Shown here: positions 5,459 to 43,563 of the stretch, piece by piece
Numbering within the stretch: the stretch's first letter is position 1
Layout: every line of letters starts with the position of its first letter
DNA from: Bigelowiella natans CCMP2755
Lineage: Eukaryota; Protista; Cercozoa
NCBI GenBank assembly: GCA_000320545.1
Contig: ADNK01001920.1
Coordinates: forward strand, 1-51,798
Direction of reading: 5' to 3'
DNA: 51,798 nt
Made by a program: the position numbers and the translations under genes
The notes under the pieces: generated by a model
Told to the model about the DNA's origin: nothing
The model's database searches: none
Seen by the model: the letters and a program-made list of their open reading frames with translations, nothing else

Positions 5459-6071
5459 ATCGAATGAATGCGTAGCGCTCGTTCAGCACGTAAATATCGA
5501 TATATAATCCAAAAAAAATTGGGGTTTTTGAATACGCCATCAGTCGCGACAAACGCAATCAGTGACGACGAATGCCTTGTGCGTTGAAAGGCATAGAGGT
5601 TACAGAAGCGCGCAGTGTCGTAGAGATATATTGCTATATGTGTAATAGTTTATGTTACTATCAATGCTGGAATGGCACTGTGAAGCTGCATCTAGTAGGT
5701 TAGCGCTGTGTAGTTTGTGATTGATCTTGGCGGCAGACAATGCGCCGATAACTATGCCAGCGCTGGGACACCAATGCATTCATCCCCCTCGATCAGAGCT
5801 CTGGAATTTATAATGGTTGTGCATGACAATCTATAACAAATACATACAATCTAGCAATAGGCGAATATGTGAAGCCCGTCCACTTAAGGAACACTTTGCA
5901 CTCACGTTGCGCCCCCGTTGCATGCACACATGCACGCTGTGAATTGGTTGCAGGTCATGATGTCACAAACGACAGCAGATAATACAATTCTGCGTAACGG
6001 TTGTTCTTCTATTATTATATCAGACCAAAATTTACTTGAATTCAGTATCTTATCTGAGATATCGCCTCTGT

Positions 6072-6149
6072 TGCATTTTTTGTTTCTCAGCCTTCATCGC
6101 CAGCATTTAATTCAGCCGTTTCAGATGTCGGTTTCATATTAGATATGCA
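6072..6149 (-). promoter_or_regulatory. Candidate eukaryotic SECIS element (type II-like) in the 3' UTR of the MerB-like gene
   Basis: Minus strand reads UGCAU-AUCUAAU-AUGA-AACCGACAUCUG-AAA-CGGC-UGAAUUAAAU-GCUG-GCGAUGAAGGC-UGAG-AAACAAAAA-AUGCA. AUGA (6137-6134) is followed by 12 nt and then AAA. There is an apical mini-helix CGGC/GCUG, CAUC/GAUG and CC/GG pairs in helix II, a closing UGAG (6089-6086), and helix I UGCAU/AUGCA. Folded by eye; helix II has mismatches. Confidence 0.65.
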
Positions 6150-6286
6150 CGTGTTAAGCGAACGAATCAGGACCATTCTAGAAAATCGTACGATTTTCGT
6201 AGCCTCTGCTCTATCTTTCCATTCCTGCACCCTAAAGAAGTCATTAGCAAGATGATATTTCTAAAAGTTGGGGCGAATTTAACAAT

Positions 6287-7171
6287 TTACGGAAGTTCCC
6301 AAAATGCCGAGGTTAGGCCCACAGAATGGAACTTAGCACGTATCTCCTCCACCGATTTTCTCTCGAAATGAGGGCATGCTCGGTTTCCGTAGAACAGCGA
6401 TGCTAATGCTGCTAACTGCTCCTCGCACACAATCGCGTAAGAGGACACTGCATTTTCGTCGATGTGTTTTCCGAGCTGTTCTTCATCTGCGAAGATGGCA
6501 AGTCTTTCATATCACGTGTCCACCAGGTCGTCATACCACTCTCTCAACGGAGCCGTAAAACATACCAATGCCTTCGGGTGCGAGGTGGAAATAATCCTTC
6601 CCTCGTGTAAGCTCATGTGTATTGATTCCCCGCTCTGGTGGCAAGTGGTGCTGATATAGCCCTTTTCGGAAAGGTTGTCGCCAGTATGTCCCAGTATGAA
6701 ACACAATCCCCATGTATCCCAAACTCAATTTCCAAATCTTTGAACGTATCTTGTGTTTCCTTGTCTTCCCTGATCTAACGCTACCCCCCTCTCTTCGGAG
6801 CCAAAGAATTGACCCAACTCTTGACCCTCCTCCATTCCGGCCTGGACGATATCAGCGCCAACAGCAGTCTCACAATAAGGGATTAGCGAGTTCTCTAGGC
6901 GAGTAGCAGCCGCTGACACAGCCTTCACGTCCAGAAGAGCGTAATGTGGGGTGGCTAGGTTGGAGAAGGGATGTGACATGAGGATCTGGTTAGTAAGCAA
7001 ACCGCTCGTGCTCCTAGAGAGAACGACATCGTGATCGCATTCCAGCTTGCGCAACGCAGCCCAGGTCTCTGCTTTCGAGAGACCAAACGCCTTTGCAAAC
7101 TGAGCCCAGTGTGGAGCTCGGCCGGACTTCAGCAGCCAGGCGTAAACAAAGTTGCGCCCTGGGGGCGCCAT
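6287..7171 (-). CDS. MerB-like (alkylmercury/organomercurial lyase family) protein, 294 aa, with two in-frame UGA codons (predicted Sec149, Sec220)
   Basis: One frame from ATG 7171 to TAA 6287-6289, interrupted only by TGA at 6725-6727 and 6512-6514. Translation: GRAPHWAQFAKAFGLSKAETWAALRKLECDHDVVL...ILMSHPFSNLATPH...FGN*VWDTWG...STTCHQSGESI...VCFTAPLREWYDDLVDT*YERLAIFADEEQ...QLAALASLFYGNRACPHFERKSVEEIRAKFHSVGLTSAFWELP. MerB-family motifs lie on both sides of each stop. Confidence 0.85.
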
Positions 7172-7441
7172 TCGCGTCGCTCGAGCAGAGGTGGTTCCGG
7201 CAACTTTCTACAGCTCTTGGTTGTCATAATTCATAAAAAGGAGAAAAATGAAATAATGCTTTTAAATGTAAAAAATGATCGAAGAATTACCAGTATAATC
7301 CAGGGTGCTTTGATAGTACGCCAAGCAAAATCGGATGTCGCTGGAAATAATATCGTGAGTAATTGTGCTTCCTCCGTCGAAGAAATATCTTAGAAATTTC
7401 GTCCTAAAATATCCCAAATCTCACACACACGTCCAGGTCCA

Positions 7442-8499
7442 ATGCGAGCTACTCGCATCGACGTCGTTGTCAACCTATGGTTTCTCCTACTGCTAACGGC
7501 CTCGCCATCCGCTTCTTCCTCCTCCTCAACCTCTGTACTGTCGAAGGAAGAGGCATTCCCACTAGTGAAGGAGCAGGGGGAGAGTATTGCTGATGTGTAT
7601 TATCACATCGCGAAACAGATGTCAAAAGAGGAAAATGGTGCTCAGGGGCAGGTAGCGCACGTGCTTTTTTAATTGGCAACGATCGATACTCAATCTTCCG
7701 GACAATCGTAGACACTCGGATGGCTTTATCTCTTGGCGGCTCTTGAGTTTAGCCCATCTAATTCGACTCTTTTGGGTAAAGAGAATCACTAACGTTGTCG
7801 TCGTCTTCGTCGTCGTTGTCATCATCACTCAAAGACCCTCCTCATCAAGCACACGTAAGCAATGCCCCCTCCCCCCCCCCCCCGTCTCGACTCCCAATTC
7901 CCTGTCAGAACCCGTGATCGAGAGCTATGTGAGGAGCGGTGACGTTGCTCTTGCGTTGGCGCACACCAAGGCCGCTCTTTCTGCGGTAGTTCGTGCGGGA
8001 AAAACTGGAGGCAAATTCGACAAGAAGTAGTACATAATGCACATGGTGATTGACGGTGTCACGTAGATATAGTTGGCACCTGCTTTTTACCCTGTCTCTG
8101 TACGGGGGCGCGGCAGCAAATCGAGTGAAAGTCCACATATAACCCTAGGGGGGGGACATTGGCTCAGGGGTATCTAACATCGATCCAGAGGAATCCCAAG
8201 GTTGTCAGGAAAAAACACACGGAGGAAATTTGAAACAAGCAAAACCTGCCAAATACATGCTCCCGCATGTTTACATGTTGGCCCCACACAATTTCTAAAT
8301 CAGCAGCAAATGAGTGATAAGTTGGTATGCGACTAGATTCTCAATGTGATACTGCTCCTTCTATCTTCCATCCCCTCATCAGGCAAAGCATTTGTTCAAA
8401 GACTCGCCAAAATTTAAGGAAGCTACGGAGGGCCACATCCCCGCCCCAAAACTTACGCTCCCGTTCTCTACTGTCATTGCAAGGTAGCATTAAGCAATC

Positions 8500-29812: not shown

Positions 29813-32800
29813 CTCATAACTGCCATTCGTCGTTAGGCTGACCATGGAAGAGATCGAGACGCTCGCCATGAAGCGAGTCCACGACAAGTTGTACGAAAAC
29901 TACCTCAAGTGGTGCCTCCACCTCGAGCGCACGGAGGTCTACACGCGCAGCCAGGGGTCCCCGGAGGGCCGCGTCCTCATGGAGAACATGGCGCTCATCA
30001 TGATGATCTGGGGGGAGGCCGCCACGATGCGGCACGTCCCCGAGTCGCTGTGCTACATCACGCACAACATGCTCAGGGAGCTCCGCACCAAGCGCGTGAG
30101 CTACAACCGGGAGCCCGGCAGCTTCCTCGCCTACGTGATCCGCCCGATGTACAACGTGCTGCGCTCCGACAACCGGGACATCTACACGAAGCGGCGGAAC
30201 TACGACGATATCAACGAGTTCTTCTGGACGCAGCAGTGCTTCGACTACTCGTACTGCGAGGCGGAGTACGCGCCCGGCACCAACGACGGCGACTCGAAGG
30301 AGGCCGAGCGGTCCATCGCGGTCGGCCTCTCCAACGCCGAGAAGACGTACATCGAGACGCGGTCCTGGTGGCACCTCGTCACCACCTTCTACCCGCTGAT
30401 CCTGTTCTACGTCGTCAGCTTCCACTTCCTCGTGTGCCTAGCCTGGGTGCTGCACCGCGACGCCAAGGGCCTGCACAACCACACCCTGAGCAACGTCACG
30501 ATGGTGTCCTTCGTGGTCACGATGTCGATCGCGCTGCTGGTGAGGGAGTTCCTGGAGCTCTACATCCGGAAGGGGAAGGACCTCCCCAACTACTCGCGCT
30601 CGGGGTCAATCTTCCGCATCTGCGTCAAGCTCACGTTCGCTCTCGCCATCAGCTTCTACTACTACCGGATGCTGTTCTGCACCGGGGACCAATGCAGCGA
30701 CGCGTGGCTTAAATACAGCGTGATCTCCTGCGCCTTCCTCCTCCCCCTCGCCGGGCAGATTCTGACCCTGATGTTCCCGATCGCGGCGCGCTGGGGAAAT
30801 CAGCTCCTCACCTCGCGCTCCTGCCTCTGGATCACGAAGCTGTGGTGGCCCAACATGGAGCAGTACATCGGCAGGGACACCAGTGAGAGCGACGGAGACT
30901 ACTTCCAGTACCAGCTATTCTGGGTGCTGCTGCTGGCGTGGAAGATGCTCATCAGCTACAACTTCCAGGTTGTGCCGTGCATCAACCCCACCCTCTGGAT
31001 ATGGGGGCAGGTCCACTTCTTCTCCCTGCCCACCCGAATCGCCTGCATCGTCGTGACATGGGTGCCGTTTTTCATCGTGTACATGTTCGATATGTACATC
31101 TGGTACGCCGTGTGGCAAGGGCTGGCGGGGCTCGTCGTGGGCATGCGCAACCGCGTTGGCCAAATCCACCAGTTCTCGCTCGTCCCGGCGCTCTTCTCCG
31201 ACTTCCCCGCCGAGATGGGGGAAAAGCTGTTCCAGACGCGCAAGCCTGAGCCGCTCATGCAGCCGAACCTGAGCATCGCTGACAAGGGAGGCAAGCCCAA
31301 CGATTTCGCCGACGGGCTGCAGCTCGAATCGACGACCCTCACCTCGTACGGGTCCATCGAGGACGACGAGATCGTGAGCAAGATGCACCAAAACCGGGAG
31401 CGCTTTCGCGTGATCTGGAACGAGATGATCTACGACCTGCGCGCCACGGACCTGATGTCCAACTCCGAGCAGTTCGTCTTCGAGTTCCGGCAGATTGAGT
31501 TCGGTAAGCTAAGCACCTTCCAGACCCCGCTCTTCGTGTCCACCAGCTCCATCAACGCCTCCCTCCAGTTCGTCGCCGCCACGGCCGCGGCGTTCAAAAA
31601 CTCCATCGTCGGCCGGGAGGAGGAGCAGCACCTGGACAGCAAGTCCGCGGCCGTCATCGCGTCCTTCATCGAGTACTTCTCGCAAACCACACGCCGCGAG
31701 TCGGTGTCCGACCTCTGGAACCTCGCCATCACGCTCGTCCGCGCGCTCACCCCCTCCAAGGCCCACGAGGCGCTCGGCGTGTTCCAAAACATCATCGAGG
31801 GCATGGCCTACCCGCGCCGCGACAACCCGTACACCGTCCTGTTCCGCAACATCCACTTGCAGAAGGTGGCGGGGCTGAAGCCGAAGCTGCTGATGCTCGT
31901 CCGAGGCGCTCGCCTCGCCCGTGCTGCCTGGAAGAAATACCGCAAGAATAAGAGGACCCCCAGCAGCAACCACTCCGCCGCCTCCCGCTCATACAGCAGC
32001 AATTCTCCTTCAAAGGGGGGCAAGTACCTGAGCGTTTCGTCCTCATCTACGTCGGGTTCGGATATCCACAAGTCTCCCTCTCTTGGCACCCTCAAGCTCA
32101 AGGAGAAGCTGGACCAGGACCAGAACTTCTACCCCTCCACGCGCAGGAAGAAGTACCACCCGGACGTCGAGAAGCACATGGCCCTCCTCAAGGACCAGCT
32201 GCGAGCGCTCCTGAAGAGCATCGTCGGCCTCCTGTGCCAAAAGCAGGAGCCCGCGCGACAGCTGGACACTCACCTCGAGGAGGTGGTGGGCTTCGTGGAC
32301 GAGCGGTTCGGGTCCTCCGACGAGCACATGCGCCAACTCGACGACTTCCTGCTGTCACCGATGTGCGACGTGATCCTCAACTCCCTCTACACCTTCCTGA
32401 CCGTCTCCAACGAGTTCGTGCCGCAGAACACCTCGGCGCGCCGGCGCATCCTGTTCTTCTGCAACTCGCTCTTCATGGACATCCCGGGCGCCCCGCCGAT
32501 CGAGCAGATGCACAGCCTGAGCACCCTCACGCCCTTCTACTCGGAGGACGTGCTGTACTCGAAGGCCTACCTGCAGAACAAGACCGCGCAGGGGTTCTCC
32601 GTGCTGCTCTACCTGCAAACGGTGTACCCCTCCGAGTGGCAGAACTTCTGCGAGAGGATGGGGATCAAGACCGGGGACGCCTCCATCCTGGAGTGGGGCT
32701 CCCAGGAGCTCCAGATGGAGGTGCGCCTCTGGGCGACGAGGAGGGGCCAGACGCTCTTCCGCACAGTCGAGGGGATGATGATGTACGAGAAGGCGGTGCG

Positions 32801-35188
32801 CGTGCTGGCGGAGCTAGAGACTCTTCCAGGAATCGCCACCGACATCAAGAACACGATGGAGGGCAAGGGGCTCAGCAGCAACCAAGCTAACTCTCCCAAC
32901 TCCGACGAGAAAACAACATCCTCAGCTCACCGGACGCCCTCCTCGGATGTGCTAGCATGCCTCAAGTACCAGTATGTGGTCTCCTGCCAGGTCTATGGCC
33001 GCCAGAAGGAGGAGAACGACCCCAAGGCGAAGGACATCGAGTTCCTACTGCACAAGTTCCCAAATCTCCGCGTCGCGTACATCGACAACAAGAAGGAGGA
33101 GGGGAAGGGCGGCGAGCTCAAGAGCAAGTACTACTCCTGCCTGATCAAAGCGGCGCCGAGGAAGGACGCGGCCACCGACGACCTCAGCTCGCCGATGATG
33201 AGCGAAGAGAAACCAACGTCAACCCGCAGCTCCTCTACCATTGCCCGCAAGAACGCCGAGGCTGACGACGAATGGAACGATGATGGCGACGACGGGCAGG
33301 GCAGCGGCGGCATCGAGACCGTGTACCGCGTTGAGCTCCCCGGCAACCCCATCATCGGGGAGGGTAAGCCCGAGAACCAAAACCACGCCATAATCTTCAC
33401 GCGCGGCGAGTTCGTCCAGGCGATCGACATGAACCAGGAGGGCTACTTCGAGGAGGCGGTCAAGATGCGGAACCTGATGGAGGAGTTTGACAAGCGGGAC
33501 AGCCGCAAGCCGACCACGATCGTCGGGTTCCGGGAGCACATCTTCACCGGCGGCCTGAGCTCCATCGCCAACTACATGGCCATGCAGGAGGGCTGCTTCG
33601 TCTCCCTCGGGCAGCGCGTGCTCCACGATCCGCTCAAGATCCGGCTGCACTACGGCCACCCCGACCTCTTTGACAAGCTCTTCTACATGACGAGGGGCGG
33701 GGTTTCGAAGGCGTCCAAGGGGATCAACCTCTCCGAGGACATCTTCGCCGGGTTTAACACGGTGCTGCGCGGCGGGCACGTCTCCTTTAAGGAGTACATC
33801 CAGTGCGGCAAGGGCCGTGACGTCGGCCTCCAGCAGCTCTACAAGTTTGAGGGGAAGCTCAGCTGCGGGAACGCGATGCAGAGCCTCACGAGGGACATGT
33901 ACCGCATATGCCGCTCCGTGGACTTCCTCAAGCTGATGTCGTTCTTCTACGGCGGCATCGGCTTCTACATCTCGACCCTGCTCGCGGTGTGGGGGCTGTA
34001 CGCCTTCTGCTACCAGCGCGTCCTCATCGCTGCCCTCAACCTGTCGCTCCCCAAGTCGTTCATCGGCATCTACACCGTCGGCTACTGGATCGGAACGATG
34101 GGGATACTGCTCACGCTGCCGATCATCTGCTCGATCGGGCTGGAGCGCGGCAGCTGGAAGGCGATCTGCAAGGTGCTGTACATGCTCATCTCCGGGGGCC
34201 CGCTGTTCTTCATGTTCCACATGGGGACCAAGGCGCACTACTTCGCCCGCACCATTCTGTCGGGGGGGGCCAAGTACCGGCCCACCGGGCGCGGCTTCGT
34301 CGCGGACCATACCAAGTTCGCCGAGCTGTTCCGGTTCTACTCGCACTCGCACTTCCAAGGCGCCGTGGAGATGGTGCTGCTGCTGATTCTGTACGGGATC
34401 TTCGATCGGCGCGTCAAGCACTACTGGGCGGTGACCTGGTGCGCGTGGGTGATCGTGCTCTCCTGGCTCTCGGCGCCCATATGGCTGAACCCGATGACCT
34501 TCGACTGGGAGCAGGTGGTGAGCGACACCAAGGACTTCATGAAGTGGATGGGAAGGCCCGAGGGCGGGAGCGACCGCTGCTGGAGGACGTGGTGGGTGGA
34601 GGAGAACAACTTCGTGGACCCCCTGCCCTTCTCCAGCAAGATGCTCTGCGCGATCCTCTCGCTGCGGCACTCGGTGAGCGCGCTCTGCATCTTTTGGTAC
34701 TCGGGCGTCGGCTTGATGAGCCCCACGGTGTGGGGTTGTGCCGGCTTCATGGTGATGATCGTCGGCTACTACTCTCTCGCCAATAGGCCCGTCGCCGCCT
34801 CGCAGCTGTGCTTCGTGAGAGGTCTCAAATCCCTCTATGTCACGGTGACGTTCGCGCTGTTCGTGATTCTGCTCGTGATCTCGCCCCCAACCAAGCACAC
34901 GATTAAGAAGACCCTGCTCGTCTTCATCGCCATCGTATACCTTCTGTGCACATTCTCCTCGTTCAGCCTGTCCTTTGGATATCGGTAGAGTCCATTCACT
35001 AGAAGAGTAGTAGCAGTAGTAGTTGTTGTTGTTGTTGTTGTTCTGGTGGTGGTGGTGGTGGTATTGGGGGGGGTGGGAGCGTTACAGCCGAGGTATTTAT
35101 TTAATAAAGGACGAAACGAATTTGATGATAATGTTTATGGTTTCTATGTTATCTGAAGCCTATTCCCCTCATTCGCTCTCCCCCCCCC

Positions 35189-37595: not shown

Positions 37596-40436
37596 ATGTC
37601 ACAGCAGCTAGAAGAACAGCAGGACTTTGGCTCGCAGGCCGTGCAAGGGCACGAGCAGAAACAGGAAAGGAAGGGCGATACGGACGCTAAGGAAGGAGGA
37701 GGAACACCTCCACAGGCACCGCCGGGACCAGCACCCGGGATTAAGAAAGCAGATGCAGCAGCAGAGGCACTGGAGAACTTCTACGAGGCGGACGACGAGG
37801 ACGTGGCCGCCGAAAGCAAGAAGGTCGTAATGGCATTACGAGCCTTGCGACCCAGGGCGAGCAACTACGCCAAACTGAAAGTATCGATAGAATACAAGTA
37901 TCAGACACATGATGTTTGGGCAGCTATCATGCAGGACATCATGGATTACGAAGCAGACTTACCTCCAGAGTGGGCAGCTTTGTTTAGGAACGACGGGGGT
38001 CTGGGCGCCTCGCGGGGGACGACCCAGAGCACCGTCAAGCAGCAGCAGCCGGTACAGCGGAACACCCAGTTCATGTCTGTTAAAACAGCACCGGTTATGA
38101 TAACGAAATACAACGGGAAAAGAGGTGAGGCAAGGAGGTGGTGGAAGAACGCTAGGAGTATACTCTGCGACTTTACCCCTAACCCCACCGAAAACGACAA
38201 GCTCAAATGGCTAGCTATAATAAAGCAAGCCATGGACCTTTACGAGACAGGCAGGACCCGGATCAGGCAGCTAGAGAAAATACACACTACAGTTAGTGGG
38301 CTACGAGACGTTGAGGCGATAATGAAGGCTTTTGTAAATGAACAGGATGCTAACTCCCTACCCCAGGCTATTAGAAAATACAGAGCAATGATGCAGCATG
38401 AGAGAGAACCTGTTAGAGACTTTGCCACGCGCTTCCAGGATATGATCGACGAACTACATGATTTTAATTACAACACAGGTGATGATCAGGCAAGGTTTGA
38501 AGAGTTCAAGTTAAAGATAAAGGAATCCACTTACGTTACGGAGAAAGGCTACACCACGATGGAGGCAGCAGTGCAGGCTATATCCCTACGCGAGCAGGAG
38601 CAGGACCGCAAGTTTACCAGCCCTAAGGTACCTGGCATAGGAAACATTAACGCTATTAAGCCGCAGCGAGACTGGTACAAGGACAGGGAAGGTAACCGAC
38701 GTTGCGGATACTGCTCACGTAAAGGGAAACACACCGCTAAAGACTGCAGAGACAGGAAAGAAGGACGACCCAGGATGACGATCAGGCAGCTCAACGAACA
38801 CTACGAGAAGTTAAAGAGAAAGAAAGGCAGAGGACAAGGATATAACAACAGCAAATGGCAAGGCAGCAACAACGGGAAGAACAATAAATATAAGAACAAA
38901 AAGCAGAACAGTATCAATGCTATACAGCAGCAGATAAACGGAATATTAGATCACCTTAAGCAGGCGCCGACGAAGACAGCAGTACCAGCAACGCAGGACC
39001 AAGACAAGCCCATGACCCTAGACGACATAAAGAACTTAGGAGTATGCAACATTAATGACGAAGACGCTAACAGGACTATCAAAGTTGCTATGACCAAGGT
39101 TAAAGTTAAAGACAGCTACGGAGACTACAAGAAACTACCTGCCCTTTGGGATAGTGGCAGCATGCCGAAGTCCTTCATAAGCCTAAGCACAGTAAGAAGG
39201 TTAGGACTATTGGATCAAGTGACTAAGAAAGAACGTAAATATGCTCAAGCAGACGGAAGCTCTTCCATGAAGACCGTCGGTGAGCTAATGCTAAAGCTAC
39301 AGATACCTGGCAGCGACGCGGAGACCCAAATCAAGACCCGAGTAGCCATGACTTTATCCATGGAACTACTCCTCGGACAGGATGCCCTAGAAAAATTAGG
39401 GGGGATCATATCATTCTACAATCACAAGATATACTTTGCTAAGTTGCCAAAGAAGTCAGGCAGGACCATCAGCCAGAACATGATACGGCTTGACGAGTGG
39501 ACCTCTGAGTCAAGCGTTAATGCGTTAGAGTTTATGGACCTAGCGGACAACAAGCTACCTACACCTACCGAGCTACGGAAGAAGAACCCCGGCAAGACCA
39601 TCCGACAGATAACGGAGCTACTGGACAAGACCCCCCCAGCTGATGATTGGGATATCGACAAGGGCAAAAAGTACATTAATAAAATATTAAACGAGAAGTA
39701 CTCTGACATCACCAAGCCGACGACGAAGCCCTCCAGCAAGCTTACCCCAGTAAAGATCGAGCTAAAGAAGGGATACGAAGAGTGCATCATCAATGACCCA
39801 GAACATAGGCGACCGGAAGCGGACTGGGAAAAGATAGAGTGGCAGATCAATGAATGGGCAAAGGAAGGGAAGATAGAGCCAAGCAACTCACCATGGAACG
39901 TGAGACATGTGCTAGCTAAGAAACCTACTTACCCTTTCTTCCGCCTGGCGCACAACTTCATCCGCCACAACCGAGTAATAAAGAGGATCCAGACACCTAC
40001 ACCAAGGATAGATGACGTTATTGAACACGTCATAGGATACAAATACTACTCTTCCCTAGATAAAAATGAATCATACATGCAGACACCCATCCACAAAACC
40101 TCCCGCCCCATTACCGCGTTCTCCAGCAGGCACAGGAAGTGGCACTTCGTCGTATTCCCTTACGGCCTAAGCATATCAGGGGATGCGTTCAGTAGTCAGA
40201 ACTACAGGGCATACACACATGATGGGATGGCGTCTGTGTTGTGGGTGTTTGTGTTTGTGTATGTGGATGATGACATAATATGTACCAACACAGTCGTCGC
40301 TCAGATCTTCCTCCTGGAAAATATATTTATTAGGTTTGCACACTTCGGTTTTACTATAACTACTCCTCGGACAGGATGCCCTAGAAAAATTAGGGGGGAT
40401 CATATCATTCTACAATCACAAGATATACTATGCTAA
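37596..40436 (+). CDS. Retrotransposon gag-protease-partial RT, frameshifted at the duplication junction (40357/40358)
   Basis: Zinc knuckle CGYCSRKGKHTAKDC, aspartic protease ALWDSGS, RT motifs FPYGL and YVDD. An out-of-frame tail follows AHFGFTI. Confidence 0.9.
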   Translation: MSQQLEEQQDFGSQAVQGHEQKQERKGDTDAKEGGGTPPQAPPGPAPGIKKADAAAEALENFYEADDEDVAAESKKVVMALRALRPRASNYAKLKVSIEYKYQTHDVWAAIMQDIMDYEADLPPEWAALFRNDGGLGASRGTTQSTVKQQQPVQRNTQFMSVKTAPVMITKYNGKRGEARRWWKNARSILCDFTPNPTENDKLKWLAIIKQAMDLYETGRTRIRQLEKIHTTVSGLRDVEAIMKAFVNEQDANSLPQAIRKYRAMMQHEREPVRDFATRFQDMIDELHDFNYNTGDDQARFEEFKLKIKESTYVTEKGYTTMEAAVQAISLREQEQDRKFTSPKVPGIGNINAIKPQRDWYKDREGNRRCGYCSRKGKHTAKDCRDRKEGRPRMTIRQLNEHYEKLKRKKGRGQGYNNSKWQGSNNGKNNKYKNKKQNSINAIQQQINGILDHLKQAPTKTAVPATQDQDKPMTLDDIKNLGVCNINDEDANRTIKVAMTKVKVKDSYGDYKKLPALWDSGSMPKSFISLSTVRRLGLLDQVTKKERKYAQADGSSSMKTVGELMLKLQIPGSDAETQIKTRVAMTLSMELLLGQDALEKLGGIISFYNHKIYFAKLPKKSGRTISQNMIRLDEWTSESSVNALEFMDLADNKLPTPTELRKKNPGKTIRQITELLDKTPPADDWDIDKGKKYINKILNEKYSDITKPTTKPSSKLTPVKIELKKGYEECIINDPEHRRPEADWEKIEWQINEWAKEGKIEPSNSPWNVRHVLAKKPTYPFFRLAHNFIRHNRVIKRIQTPTPRIDDVIEHVIGYKYYSSLDKNESYMQTPIHKTSRPITAFSSRHRKWHFVVFPYGLSISGDAFSSQNYRAYTHDGMASVLWVFVFVYVDDDIICTNTVVAQIFLLENIFIRFAHFGFTITTPRTGCPRKIRGDHIILQSQDILC

Positions 40437-41351
40437 GTTACCAAAGAAGTCAGGCAGGACCATCAGCCAGAACATGATACGGCTTGACGAGTGGACCTCT
40501 GAGTCAAGCGTTAATGCGTTAGAGTTTATGGACCTAGCGGACAACAAGCTACCTACACCTTCCGAGATACGGAAGAAGAACCCCGGCAAGACCATCCGAC
40601 AGATAACGGAGCTACTGGACAAGACCCCCCCAGCTGATGATTGGGATATCGACAAGGGCAAAAAGTACATTAATAAAATATTAAACGAGAAGTACTCTGA
40701 CATTACCAAGCCGACGACGAAGCCCTCCAGCAAACTTACCCCAGTAAAGATCGAGCTAAAGGAGGGATACGAAGAGTGCATCATCAATGACCCAGAACAT
40801 AGGCGACCGGAAGCGGACTGGGAAAAGATAGAGTGGCAGATCAATGAATGGGCAAAGGAAGGGAAGATAGAGCCAAGCAACTCACCATGGAACGTGAGAC
40901 ATGTGCTAGCTAAGAAACCTACTTACCCTTTCTTCCGCCTGGCGCACAACTTCATCCGCCACAACCGAGTAATAAAGAGGATCCAGACACCTACACCAAG
41001 GATAGATGACGTTATTGAACACGTCATAGGATACAAATACTACTCTTCCCTAGATAAAAATGAATCATACATGCAGACACCCATCCACAAAACCTCCCGC
41101 CCCATTACCGCGTTCTCCAGCAGGCACAGGAAGTGGCACTTCGTCGTATTCCCTTACGGCCTAAGCATATCAGGGGATGCGTTCAGTAGTCAGAACTACA
41201 GGGCATACACACATGATGGGATGGCGTCTGTGTTGTGGGTGTTTGTGTTTGTGTATGTGGATGATGACATAATATGTACCAACACAGTCGTCGCTCAGAT
41301 CTTCCTCCTGGAAAATATATTTATTAGGTTTGCACACTTCGGTTTTACTAT
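39364..41351 (+). repeat. Tandem duplication of a 994-bp unit (39364..40357 and 40358..41351)
   Basis: AACTACTCCTCGGACAGG...GGTTTTACTAT occurs twice back to back, with about 7 substitutions between the copies. Confidence 0.93.
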
Positions 41352-43563
41352 TAGACTGCAGAAGTGTACATTCCTAGCTACAAGAATCAAGTGGTGTGGA
41401 TATTACCTGGAGCAAGGCCGCATCACCCCAAACCCCGAGAAAGTAGCAGCACTACAGCAAGCCCCTAAACCTAAGAATGCAAAGGAGTTAAAGTCATTCT
41501 TGCAGACTGCAGCTTGGATACTACGTAGGTTCTCCCCTACCTACGCTAGGACTGCAGCTGCTTTTACTACTGCTTACCGGAAGGAGAACTCTGTAGGCCT
41601 CAGCTTCGCTAAGGTGTGGGCCAAGGCTGGCCTTGATGCCCACTTCGATAACCTAATAAAGTTATGCAGCAACACCCTATTGAATGCTAAGCTAGACACT
41701 ACTAGACCAGCTACCCTATGGACAGACTGGTCTAAGCTAGGTATGGCTGCTGTACTTACCCAAGACCAGCAGATCATACGGGTGTGGGGCAGGGCCTGCA
41801 CAGCAGCTGAGGCCAAGTACAGCCCTACAAAAGGAGAGTATAAAGCCATGACTGAGGCGCAGAGGAAACTAAGATACTACCTGCTGTCGGTGCCCAGCTT
41901 CACCTTAATGACTGACCACAAGCCCCTCCTAGGCATCGACCGCAAGCTCGAAGCGCCTAACGATGAGTATGCAGCTATGAGGGCGGACACGGAAGAGTTT
42001 AGGGACAAGAGGACAGTGGTCTACGCACCAGGAGACAAGCAGCTTGCTGACTATTTCAGCAGGCTGTTCGAAAAGAAAGTCCCTACCCAGGTCACCCCTA
42101 TGGTTAACGCGATTACCTTCGAGGACGGCGACTTCCTGCCTGAGCCAGAGGAGCTCCAGCACCTTCAAGAACACCTGGATAAATACAAACACAAGCATGA
42201 GGTACTTAGTGATAGGATATATGTATACACTAATAATGTTAGGCGTACCTACGTGCCACGGCGGACCAGGGGAGCCCTTCTCTTTACCGCCCATGGACCT
42301 GCACACGTAGGAGAAAACCATATCACTGCTCTACTCTACCATTACTACTGGCCCTACAAGCTAAAAGAGATAAGGACATACCTGCGTGGCTGCAGGTGCT
42401 CCAGCTTGAAGGCGGCAGGCGTCGCCACCAAGGAGTCCAGCAAGAGCCGTGCATCTAAGAAAATCAAAGCAAGGAACTTCTTAGATATCGTGCAAATTGA
42501 TGTTTATAAGTACGATGGCTATCACTACCTTACCTTCGTTGATGTGGCCACTGGAAAGTGCTGGGTTAAAAAGATTATCAAGGTCAACGTTGCTAAGAAG
42601 AACAAAGGCTTATATAAGCAGAGGCTTACTAACTGCTACCGTACCTGGGAGTCTGAGCTCCAGGCTATCCCTGATGAAGTTAGCATAAACAAGATACCAA
42701 AGAAGTTACATGTGGATAATGAGACCTCTCTTCTACAGCTACCACACCCTAATATTGATGCCTCACCTGTACACTATGCCCAGTCCAACTCCAAGGTAGA
42801 GCGACTCCACCGCACCTTGGCCAACCTAAGCAGGATAAATAGCACCACACCAGACAAGATACAAGGGTTAGTAAACGACACCTTCACGTCTGGGGGAGGT
42901 ATCAAGGATAAGGAGAGGGAAGAAGGCGACGACAACGACGACGATACCGAGAGCGAAGACGAGAAGGTCCCGTACGATGGCCGAGTTCTAAAGGAAGGAC
43001 AGTATGTTAGGGCCAAGGTAAATCTGAGATCGAGAAATAAACAAGACCCCTTCTGGGGTGGCGTTGCAAAGGTTACCGAGAGGAAGGGGAGGAAGCAGTA
43101 CTACATCTATGATGGGAACAGGGTCACCTTGCGCCACATCAGTCACCTAAAGAATTATGATATCGGTGAGAAGCTCCTAGAGGATGTTAAAGTAAACCCT
43201 ACTGTGTGGGAGCGAGCAATGCCTTGTTTAGGACCCCGACCTAAGTTCGATGTGGAATATGGAAACAATAAGGTCAGGGTGAACGACGATTGGCGCATGA
43301 AGATTGTCTATCTAGGCTACCCTGGATTACGAAATATGGAGAGGGTAGCTATGAAAATAAAGGACGGAAAATATCAGCTACTCTACCTAGCTGTTCCCGA
43401 CTTACCCTTTGAGCACTGGTATAAGGTCCTGGGGGACCTTGATGCAGAGGGCTGGTATGGACACGAACCTAAGGACGAAGGTGAGTTCTGGGTAAGCGAC
43501 AAAGGAGATAAGGTTAGAGAGGAATCTATTACCTGGTGGTTGGTGAAGTTCCGAAAGCGATGA
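40474..43563 (+). CDS. Retrotransposon pol: RT, RNase H, integrase and a C-terminal extension
   Basis: YVDD, KCTF, RNase H (WTDWSKLGMAAVL, YSPTKGEY, TDHKPL, ADYFSR), integrase (HGPAH...CRC, QIDVY, HVDNE, SNSKVERLHRTL) and an SH3/GPY-F-like segment RHISHLKNY. Confidence 0.92.
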   Translation: MIRLDEWTSESSVNALEFMDLADNKLPTPSEIRKKNPGKTIRQITELLDKTPPADDWDIDKGKKYINKILNEKYSDITKPTTKPSSKLTPVKIELKEGYEECIINDPEHRRPEADWEKIEWQINEWAKEGKIEPSNSPWNVRHVLAKKPTYPFFRLAHNFIRHNRVIKRIQTPTPRIDDVIEHVIGYKYYSSLDKNESYMQTPIHKTSRPITAFSSRHRKWHFVVFPYGLSISGDAFSSQNYRAYTHDGMASVLWVFVFVYVDDDIICTNTVVAQIFLLENIFIRFAHFGFTIRLQKCTFLATRIKWCGYYLEQGRITPNPEKVAALQQAPKPKNAKELKSFLQTAAWILRRFSPTYARTAAAFTTAYRKENSVGLSFAKVWAKAGLDAHFDNLIKLCSNTLLNAKLDTTRPATLWTDWSKLGMAAVLTQDQQIIRVWGRACTAAEAKYSPTKGEYKAMTEAQRKLRYYLLSVPSFTLMTDHKPLLGIDRKLEAPNDEYAAMRADTEEFRDKRTVVYAPGDKQLADYFSRLFEKKVPTQVTPMVNAITFEDGDFLPEPEELQHLQEHLDKYKHKHEVLSDRIYVYTNNVRRTYVPRRTRGALLFTAHGPAHVGENHITALLYHYYWPYKLKEIRTYLRGCRCSSLKAAGVATKESSKSRASKKIKARNFLDIVQIDVYKYDGYHYLTFVDVATGKCWVKKIIKVNVAKKNKGLYKQRLTNCYRTWESELQAIPDEVSINKIPKKLHVDNETSLLQLPHPNIDASPVHYAQSNSKVERLHRTLANLSRINSTTPDKIQGLVNDTFTSGGGIKDKEREEGDDNDDDTESEDEKVPYDGRVLKEGQYVRAKVNLRSRNKQDPFWGGVAKVTERKGRKQYYIYDGNRVTLRHISHLKNYDIGEKLLEDVKVNPTVWERAMPCLGPRPKFDVEYGNNKVRVNDDWRMKIVYLGYPGLRNMERVAMKIKDGKYQLLYLAVPDLPFEHWYKVLGDLDAEGWYGHEPKDEGEFWVSDKGDKVREESITWWLVKFRKR

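Follow-up and report, generated by a model that had tools for sequence, protein, structure and literature searches.

MerB, its described relatives and the Bigelowiella gene

The organomercurial lyase MerB is regarded as a prokaryotic enzyme. Its Cys96 and Cys159 are ligands to the mercury of R-Hg+; a proton from Asp99 is transferred to the carbon, RH departs, and Hg(II) then remains on Cys96, Asp99 and Cys159 until it is taken by thiols or by MerA (Lafrance-Vanasse et al. 2009, summarised in PMC8261052 and 10.1101/2022.07.06.499078). In their survey, Christakis et al. recognise MerB by positions 96, 99, 117 and 159 (PMC8261052). A selenoprotein relative, SaoL, is known as a MerB-like organometallic lyase of anaerobic bacteria (Haft, 10.1101/2022.07.06.499078; PMC13188914). 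Here we describe a gene on the minus strand (7171-6287) of contig ADNK01001920.1 of the cercozoan Bigelowiella natans CCMP2755 (assembly GCA_000320545.1); the whole 51,798-nucleotide stretch analysed is called the window. We think it probable, with a good deal of confidence, that this is a functional nuclear gene for a MerB-family protein in which both metal-ligand cysteines are replaced by UGA-encoded selenocysteine (Sec149 and Sec220).

With canonical MerB (PF03243; PDB entries 3F0P and 1S6L, and MerB2, 5C17) the B. natans protein shares its Pfam family, the layout of an N-terminal domain followed by a core, and correspondence at the four signature positions, and the MerB fold is matched by models of the closest cysteine-form relatives. 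It departs from MerB in having predicted selenocysteine (Sec) for both metal-ligand cysteines, such that Asp152 and Cys177 of the four-residue signature are present but positions 96 and 159 are UGA, and in carrying an insertion of ~40 residues after the N-domain and a helical C-terminal extension of ~60 residues. Its host, moreover, is a eukaryote, and its gene is monocistronic, without MerA, MerR or MerT partners.

SaoL (NF040728) is likewise a MerB relative with Sec at the Cys159 position that databases truncate at the UGA, and it bears out a remark in the original prediction for this locus, made from the sequence alone, that Sec-containing relatives of MerB were known from bacteria. However, SaoL has a single Sec, within a Cys-Sec dipeptide, keeps Cys at the Cys96 position, uses a bacterial selenocysteine insertion sequence (SECIS) and belongs to a conserved nine-gene sao cluster, whereas the B. 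natans protein has two predicted Sec residues, no such dipeptide (the second site reads T-U-Y/H, U being Sec) and a putative eukaryotic SECIS in the 3' untranslated region (UTR).

The nearest sister group of the eukaryotic proteins is an orphan prokaryotic MerB-like subfamily (L020-L040 and L060-L064, some from Actinomycetota contigs), which shares the LMAHPFS, C/U-x-W-D and T-C/U motifs and the extension ending in FW-x-L. This subfamily differs in lacking the insertion and in having Cys at both sites, with the exception of one Gemmatimonadetes metagenome-assembled genome (MAG). Several UGA codons per mRNA, a 3' UTR SECIS and truncation by gene callers are also features of SELENOP, of SELENOW with a UxxU motif and of PDI_e with GUGUU (PMC7539508), but these are thioredoxin-fold or selenium-transport proteins with neighbouring Sec residues, while those of B. 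natans lie 71 residues apart, and are predicted to meet at the metal site of a non-redox lyase fold.

A conserved frame interrupted by two UGA codons

The frame consists of a Met codon and 293 further codons followed by TAA, without any frameshift, and its 294-residue product has a predicted mass of ~32.7 kDa. Exactly two stops interrupt it internally, both of them TGA, at codons 149 and 220. The original prediction had described just such a frame, with the first TGA between GN and VW-D, the second after WYDDLVDT and an ordinary TGC for the cysteine of STTCHQSG, and read-through translation reproduced every one of these details, as FGN-TGA-VWD, as LVDT-TGA-YER and as codon 177 (6641-6643). It had also foreseen that gene callers would end the product at 148 residues, and all public protein sets do stop at codon 148.

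In our searches the protein pieces between stops were submitted separately, and a read-through protein with X at both stops was used for comparisons by our own scripts. A six-frame profile search of the 91.4-Mb assembly, with stops read through, found a single match to PF03243, at 6398-6736 on the minus strand, covering profile positions 18-122 of 126 with both TGA codons inside it; at 29.8 bits against a gathering cut-off of 27, it places the protein in the MerB superfamily as Pfam defines it. The 70-residue middle piece alone still matched MerB, at 22 bits, and had no match in a PDB sequence search; the N-terminal and C-terminal pieces, each scanned alone against Pfam and NCBIfam, gave no match. 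An AlphaFold model of the 148-residue N-terminal piece has a confident winged-helix-like fold over residues 1-100, and none of its structural matches in the PDB was significant, MerB2 standing fourth (E 0.49). The predicted continuation of MerB-family similarity across both TGA codons therefore held, in that the PF03243 match passes through both and homology reaches the C-terminal FW-x-L motif common to prokaryotic and eukaryotic homologues. The features of the gene, all on the minus strand, are as follows.

6290-7171: coding sequence, 294 codons including two UGA (predicted Sec), intronless, colinear with transcript-like contigs
6872-7171: N-terminal winged-helix-like domain, residues 1-100, with an invariant LM-x-HPFS motif; AlphaFold confidence score (pLDDT) ~90; residues 6-78 align with the prokaryotic MerB-like N-domain profile
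6752-6871: variable insertion, residues ~101-140, of low confidence (pLDDT ~50), absent in prokaryotic relatives and longer than in other eukaryotes
6398-6736: MerB catalytic core (the PF03243 match), spanning both UGA codons
6725-6727: UGA codon 149, predicted Sec at the MerB Cys96 position, motif GN-U-x-W-D; Cys (ANC-x-WD) in prokaryotes
6716-6718: Asp152, the counterpart of the proton-donating Asp99 in MerB; invariant D in U/C-x-W/Y-D in eukaryotes and prokaryotes
6641-6643: Cys177 (TGC), aligned with the non-catalytic MerB Cys117, in STTCHQSG
6512-6514: UGA codon 220, predicted Sec aligned with MerB Cys159, within LV-x-T-U; prokaryotes have Cys here (NT-C-SN), apart from the TGA of one Gemmatimonadetes MAG
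6290-6511: residues 221-294, which follow the second UGA and include a helical extension, absent from canonical MerB, with FWELP at its end; conserved from bacteria to eukaryotes
6287-6289: true stop codon TAA, directly after the conserved C-terminal ...FWELP

Eukaryotic orthologues and selection

A HMMER scan of 1.84 billion representative proteins, with the 148-residue N-terminal piece as query, found 17 proteins, 12 of which end in G/A-N, directly before the position of the window's first TGA; a homologue search restricted in word size and length had given two hits for this piece. Orthologous DNA was taken from the contigs behind these matches and from a metagenome scan, and comprises ten full-length eukaryotic sequences (the window, L014, L016, L017, L041/L042, L046, L056/L057 and L058) and four partial ones that cover the first site (L013, L015, L044 and L045). 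TGA stands at site 1 in 14 of 14 sequences and at site 2 in 10 of 10, counting those that reach each site, an agreement well beyond what chance would give, and Cys is found at these positions in ~20 prokaryotic sequences. The orthologues have no further in-frame stops, their real stop (TAA, TAG or TGA) follows a FWELP-like end, and all those known at the DNA level are intronless. Since they are only 34-51% identical to the window protein, the shared TGA codons are not due to recent common ancestry. No eukaryotic Cys-form was seen in a search made without a length filter.

Coding conservation continues downstream of both TGA codons. Mid-diverged pairs share 59-72% of their amino acids upstream of the first TGA, 71-77% from there to the second and 52-68% beyond it, and the corresponding dN/dS values (Nei-Gojobori) are ~0.13-0.19, 0.14-0.21 and 0.12-0.43. 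Downstream of each TGA the ratio is mostly <0.25, in a range similar to that of the N-terminal part. Purifying selection thus continues downstream of each TGA, and the neutral evolution after the first TGA that would have spoken against the original prediction is not seen.

These observations bear on the alternative that the locus is a pseudogene or that its real product is a 148-residue N-terminal fragment with a decaying remnant downstream. The behaviour of gene callers and of every public protein set, all of which stop at codon 148, agrees with that view. Yet both TGA codons are fixed at the same columns in lineages 35-50% identical, frameshifts and other stops are absent, dN/dS is well below 1 after each TGA and conservation reaches the C-terminal FW-x-L of full-length prokaryotic proteins, and we regard either possibility as very improbable.

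Members truncated in public protein sets, at 85-204 residues, have as their EukProt names Gymnodinium smaydae, two single-cell genomes of Picozoa and the choanoflagellate Acanthoeca spectabilis, while marine metagenomes and metatranscriptomes, those of Tara Oceans among them, supplied further members; the family is spread over Rhizaria, a dinoflagellate, Picozoa, a choanoflagellate and marine plankton. A maximum-likelihood tree sets all eukaryotic sequences apart from the prokaryotic in a single split, with support 100/99 and a long branch, the tree being unrooted such that a donor cannot be named. Five of the eight distinct full-length lineages (L014, L016, L017, L046 and L058) have a hydrophobic, signal-peptide-like leader of 11-26 residues before A-P-x-H-R-N, while the B. 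natans protein (7157-7171), L041 and L056 start directly with that motif and have no leader. Localisation therefore probably differs between lineages, with secreted or organellar versions in some and cytosolic versions in others.

Prokaryotic relatives and the MerB active site

The same scans returned ~25 prokaryotic relatives, 26-38% identical in the N-domain and homologous over the full length. They derive from soil and marine metagenomes, from MAGs (Acidobacteriota, Kiloniellaceae, Bathyarchaeota, Acidimicrobiia and Gemmatimonadetes) and from Murinocardiopsis flavida, and are uninterrupted proteins of ~225 residues with the motifs ANC-x-WD and NT-C-SN. In a joint alignment the column of the first TGA is that of the first prokaryotic Cys and the column of the second TGA that of the second, and Asp stands without exception three residues beyond site 1. 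A hidden Markov model of 10 prokaryotic sequences aligned end-to-end with the X-masked window protein at 106.8 bits, placing both X on Cys match states.

The connection with MerB of known structure is made through one of these relatives, L026, which scores 102.9 bits on Pfam MerB, the PF03243 scores of the relatives spanning 71-103 bits. Together with the 106.8-bit alignment, these scores make the placing of the window protein in the MerB superfamily indirectly much stronger than its own match does. Aligned to the MerB crystal-structure sequences, its Cys-x-x-Asp falls on Cys96 and Asp99, the Cys of FCHHC on Cys117 and the Cys of NTC on Cys159. Its AlphaFold model (pLDDT 81.8) matched only MerB and MerB2 among PDB chains at E<0.001 (E 3e-10 to 6e-6, TM ~0.5). 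By transitivity through this prokaryotic homologue, predicted Sec149 corresponds to Cys96, Asp152 to Asp99, Cys177 to Cys117 and predicted Sec220 to Cys159. Both stops thus align with the conserved cysteines to which the original prediction had assigned them, and Asp99 and Cys117 are conserved as well.

One relative departs from the all-cysteine pattern. In a Gemmatimonadetes MAG (JAJDTB010000035.1, L064, gene ~6000-6637) site 1 is Cys and site 2 is TGA (6415-6417), conservation continues past the TGA to a FWEMG end, and a stable hairpin begins 11 nt downstream of the TGA (-30.1 kcal/mol, z -1.9). We consider this a candidate bacterial one-Sec form, distinct from SaoL; as aligned, it is a predicted natural Cys/Sec swap at site 2 inside the subfamily.

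A TGA of another kind occurs in the same gene of two peat metagenome contigs that belong to separate samples, Ga0187782 and Ga0187784 (L018:3472-3474, and L019), at a column that is Trp in all other prokaryotic homologues (...HLNEW...). Frame and conservation continue after it, and it could reflect a code in which TGA is Trp, a shared mutation or a pseudogene.

Transcription and genomic setting

A 1158-nt contig of JGI sample 3300017095, a number series that we take to be that of the MMETSP culture transcriptomes, follows the window colinearly over a span that begins 40 nt before the ATG and ends 233 nt after the TAA, differs from it by 3 single-nucleotide polymorphisms and has both TGA codons. 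Different studies have also yielded three public runs of this organism, whose contigs span 5954-7208, 5992-7230 and 6007-7201, with no joints and zero differing letters relative to the window; the total contig size of these runs, 20-40 Mb, fits transcriptomes and not the 91-Mb genome. Depth is zero in the flanking intergenic bins at 5500-5925 and 7275-7416, and the next gene starts in separate contigs at ~7424-7495. Raw reads of a run recorded as RNA-seq are confined to 5926-6350, have their first mates on the minus strand and look like 3'-end tags.

Gene-sized, colinear contigs without joints or differences indicate that both TGA codons are retained in an unspliced mRNA, as the original prediction requires of the mature message. 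This mRNA runs from ~7230 to ~5954, is intronless and has a short 5' UTR. Its two untranslated regions, both on the minus strand, are:

7172-7230: 5' UTR; contig starts at 7201-7230, no upstream AUG within the contigs
5954-6286: 3' UTR of ~280-335 nt; contig ends at 5954, 5992 and 6007, and the RNA-seq read pile-up

An intronless gene of an otherwise prokaryotic family invites the suspicion of bacterial contamination in the assembly, or of a very recent bacterial insertion. The gene is single copy in the 91-Mb genome, and its 51.8-kb contig also encodes, as eukaryotic neighbours, the pol of a retrotransposon, a 1,3-beta-glucan synthase and a ceramidase, with typical sequence composition around it. 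To this setting are added 5' and 3' UTRs on gene-sized transcripts, a clade of eukaryotes only, set off from the prokaryotic sequences by a branch that is long and has full support, and EukProt members from a dinoflagellate, two Picozoa single-cell genomes and a choanoflagellate. A bacterial origin of this kind is, on such evidence, scarcely credible.

Decoding of UGA as selenocysteine

The Sec machinery to which the original prediction appealed is present in the same genome as regards tRNA-Sec (68.5 bits, anticodon TCA by ARAGORN) and SelD/SPS, and SepSecS is found too, the last two each in several exons. There are also glutathione peroxidase (GPx) genes of the Sec type, with at least four loci that have a single in-frame TGA at the Sec site, one of them reading ...NAAPM-U-GITT, a classical Sec site:

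G000:C2359:80119-80457 (L049): GPx locus with TGA at the Sec site
G000:C3223 (L055): GPx locus with TGA at the Sec site
G000:C1529 (L050): GPx locus with TGA at the Sec site
G000:C3163 (L054): GPx locus with TGA at the Sec site

Beyond the TAG of the GPx gene on C2359, at a distance of ~100 nt, lies a clean SECIS-like hairpin of form 1 with a GUGA core instead of AUGA, and the gene on C3223 has a form-2 SECIS candidate with an AUAAA bulge. For B. natans, a survey of algal selenoproteomes reported 23 genes for selenoproteins (PMC7539508).

There is no general reassignment of TGA: it terminates the pol frame of the retrotransposon in the window and is the gene's own terminator, after the conserved FWELP end, in the orthologues L041, L042 and L058. 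The original prediction had cited two ordinary TGA stops in the window, and of these the one in pol stands, while the methyltransferase said to end in the other was not found; an open reading frame (ORF) at 1082-1594 does end in TGA and is without a Pfam match.

For the SECIS, the weakest part of the case, we relied on a rule-based scan with dinucleotide shuffles, which replaced a generic energy scan for AUGA...AA...GA that had been dropped because of many false positives in random 3-kb loci. The rules require a core of A/G-UGA with a canonical closing pair and >=6 of the first 11 nt paired, an AA left unpaired at 11-16 nt from the core, a GA in the 3' strand and 30-64 nt of inner length. The candidate that ranks first in the 3' UTR is of form 2:

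6074-6149, minus strand: SECIS candidate, AUGA at 6134-6137, AAA at 6119-6121 (12 nt after the core), GA at 6087-6088

Its helix II has 2 + 4 bp around a 2x2 purine loop, and is followed by a five-nucleotide bulge ending in AAA and a 4-bp helix III. At -9.8 kcal/mol it is the best in the 333-nt UTR, and 13 of 200 dinucleotide shuffles equalled it. In two GPx 3' regions of the same genome, taken as controls, the result was comparable, 4 of 100 shuffles in each, and one of the control candidates is built alike, a helix, a 2x2 purine loop and another helix being followed by an xxAAA bulge and helix III. Among the orthologues, the 3' UTR candidates of L014 and L041 are strong (1/100 and 0/100 shuffles) and those of L056 and L058 weak; L016 has a clean GUGA...CCC hairpin. 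A covariance model, R1, built from the SECIS-like hairpin of L041/L042, recovered the L014 candidate (E 0.41). The hairpin at 6074-6149 is somewhat favoured as a functional SECIS, and the presence of a SECIS somewhere in the 3' UTR is much more likely than that.

Several results weigh against Sec insertion or against this particular element. The window candidate is weak (-7 to -10 kcal/mol, interrupted helix II, large internal loop, p ~0.065), and R1 detected neither it nor the GPx candidates. The rule-based scan gave no AA-type SECIS candidate for L016 and L017. The Rfam model SECIS_1 had no match in the gene region, in the 3' UTR alone or in four orthologue contigs; across the whole 91-Mb genome, RF00031 produced a single sub-threshold match (24.8 bits) that does not fold as a clean SECIS, and the model is for this reason insensitive here and its silence uninformative. 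PSTK had no match in the genome with the one model used, TIGR03575. Sec insertion is, finally, predicted here from genes and transcripts.

A translation of both UGA codons that does not involve Sec, by near-cognate insertion of Cys or Trp or by programmed readthrough, would sit well with the modest SECIS candidate of the window, and the TGA at a conserved Trp column in L018 and L019 shows that TGA can occur at columns other than Cys. In the eukaryotic clade, however, TGA is found only at the two catalytic Cys columns and no TGC or TGT replaces it in 10 divergent sequences, as obligate Sec predicts; tRNA-Sec, SepSecS, SPS and Sec-type GPx are in the genome; TGA terminates other ORFs and some orthologues of the same gene; and the 3' UTRs of L014 and L041 contain strong SECIS-like hairpins. 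We therefore consider readthrough of this sort improbable, and decoding of both UGA codons as Sec, giving a translated two-Sec MerB-family protein, highly likely.

Other structures around the 3' UTR may be recorded here. A second SECIS-like candidate at 6010-6100 (minus strand), overlapping the first, was rejected since its AA is too close to the core and it fails the spacing rule, with a helix rich in G-U pairs. A distal, imperfect hairpin of ~100 nt at ~5965-6075 (minus strand) has no GA/UGA core and is not SECIS-like; it dominates the minimum-free-energy fold of the UTR, which as a whole is no stabler than shuffles (z 0.19). Between the stop codon and the SECIS candidate lies a perfect 18-nt palindrome (6181-6198, minus strand; GAAAATCG-TA-CGATTTTC type) that forms an 8-bp hairpin. 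The best match of R1 was at L048:1101-1155 (minus strand; G000:C1943), with 18.1 bits and E 0.002 and without a clear AUGA core; an Rdx-family (SelT/W/H-like) gene of like orientation ends ~350 nt upstream of it.

Proposed mechanism and possible substrates

In proposing a mechanism we suppose that the ribosome reads both UGA codons as Sec with the aid of a 3' UTR SECIS, most likely the 6074-6149 hairpin. The two selenolates would then form, together with Asp152, a MerB-type site able to bind a soft metal bonded to carbon, and Asp152 would protonate the leaving carbon, in a protonolysis of the C-Hg or a similar C-metal bond. Selenolates are deprotonated at neutral pH and are softer and stronger mercury ligands than thiolates. 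Their mercury affinity is particularly high, and selenoamino acids demethylate methylmercury without any enzyme (PMC10114901); the capture of trace methylmercury and cleavage of its C-Hg bond should be favoured accordingly in a selenolate site. Release of Hg(II), on the other hand, would probably be slow, given the very strong Hg-Se bonds and the absence of a MerA above the model cut-off, and the outcome might be either slow turnover by way of a thiol or selenol acceptor or a near-stoichiometric demethylating sink.

Whether mercury is involved at all is where the functional evidence divides. A genuine two-Sec protein of MerB fold for which organomercurials are not the physiological substrate is a serious alternative, to which we give rather less than even weight; it might act on tin, lead, copper, selenium or arsenic species, or be a metal-binding protein or chaperone and not a lyase. 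MerB itself binds other heavy metals, and one substitution makes it a copper binder (10.1101/2022.07.06.499078). The B. natans protein has its own N-domain motif and C-terminal extension, and it and its relatives fall far below the equivalog cut-offs of MerB and SaoL. Its three separate pieces have no match to NF033555 or NF009710 (cut-offs 200 and 193 bits), and a Cys-form relative reaches only 54-59 bits, the NCBIfam scores of the B. natans protein being lowered by scoring pieces separately; the middle piece has 13.5 bits (E 0.05) against the SaoL model NF040728, with a cut-off of 140. The gene lacks the context of a mer operon and that of a sao cluster, and no mer genes stand beside its Cys-form prokaryotic relatives in the neighbourhoods examined, which are unrelated to one another and have no recurrent partner except DUF885 twice. 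The B. natans genome contains no MerA above cut-off (best 292.6 vs 454 bits), and two selenolates might grip Hg(II) so firmly that turnover is prevented. All of this tells against an organomercurial lyase in the strict sense. In favour of such a lyase are the retention of the catalytic signature positions 96, 99, 117 and 159, including the proton-donor Asp (PMC8261052), and the chemistry of selenolates and selenoamino acids with mercury noted above (PMC10114901).

Set against one another by analogy with MerB, these points leave organomercurial cleavage in vivo, with organomercurials as the physiological substrate, roughly balanced and leaning slightly to the negative. The widest claim, that the gene is the founding member of a eukaryote-wide, obligately two-Sec organometal lyase family that cleaves the C-Hg bond of methylmercury, we consider unlikely as a whole, if worth stating. 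The best match to the MerA model, an uninterrupted 487-residue ORF at G000:C3323:19615-20997 (plus strand), is probably an ordinary flavoprotein disulfide reductase.

Novelty and significance

The original prediction had placed the family, to its knowledge, outside the described eukaryotic selenoproteins, and this agrees with the algal selenoproteome survey, which covers 137 species, B. natans among them, and 42 families, and in which neither MerB nor mercury appears (PMC7539508). In the literature searched, whose coverage is partial and may lack papers under subscription (the Aureococcus selenoproteome study, for example), the bacterial one-Sec SaoL was the only MerB relative with Sec, and no eukaryotic or planktonic MerB selenoprotein was found, an earlier description being possible. 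The sequences thus look like an undescribed eukaryotic selenoprotein family, an obligately two-Sec branch of the MerB family. Truncation in every public protein set has made this family invisible to annotation and to environmental surveys based on merB.

To our knowledge, almost all known eukaryotic selenoproteins are thiol-redox enzymes, and a lyase-fold protein in which both metal ligands are Sec, with no Cys-form in eukaryotes, would if true be a new use of selenium in these organisms. It would also be the first eukaryotic enzyme of MerB type, with a diselenolate-aspartate site. The degradation of methylmercury by phytoplankton has been called an open question (review, PMC10114901); the gene occurs in several lineages of marine protists and offers a concrete candidate, open to experimental test, for methylmercury breakdown in plankton, and, if its proposed activity is true, could be the missing enzyme of the degradation suspected in marine phytoplankton and protists, linking the ocean cycles of selenium and mercury. 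The series from Cys/Cys in prokaryotes through Cys/Sec in the Gemmatimonadetes MAG to Sec/Sec in eukaryotes would amount to a natural experiment on Sec in metal-carbon chemistry.

Other features of the window

Two further features of the contig stand apart from the MerB-like gene. The retrotransposon occupies 37596-43563 on the plus strand as two long consecutive ORFs of 946 and 1029 codons, the second of which (pol, 40474-43563) has reverse-transcriptase and RNase H domains and TGA as its terminator. The 1,3-beta-glucan synthase is encoded by an uninterrupted 1714-codon ORF at 29844-34988 on the plus strand (Pfam Glucan_synthase 617.8 bits, FKS1_dom1), which lies in an island of 57-62% GC, the remainder of the window being 42-50% GC.

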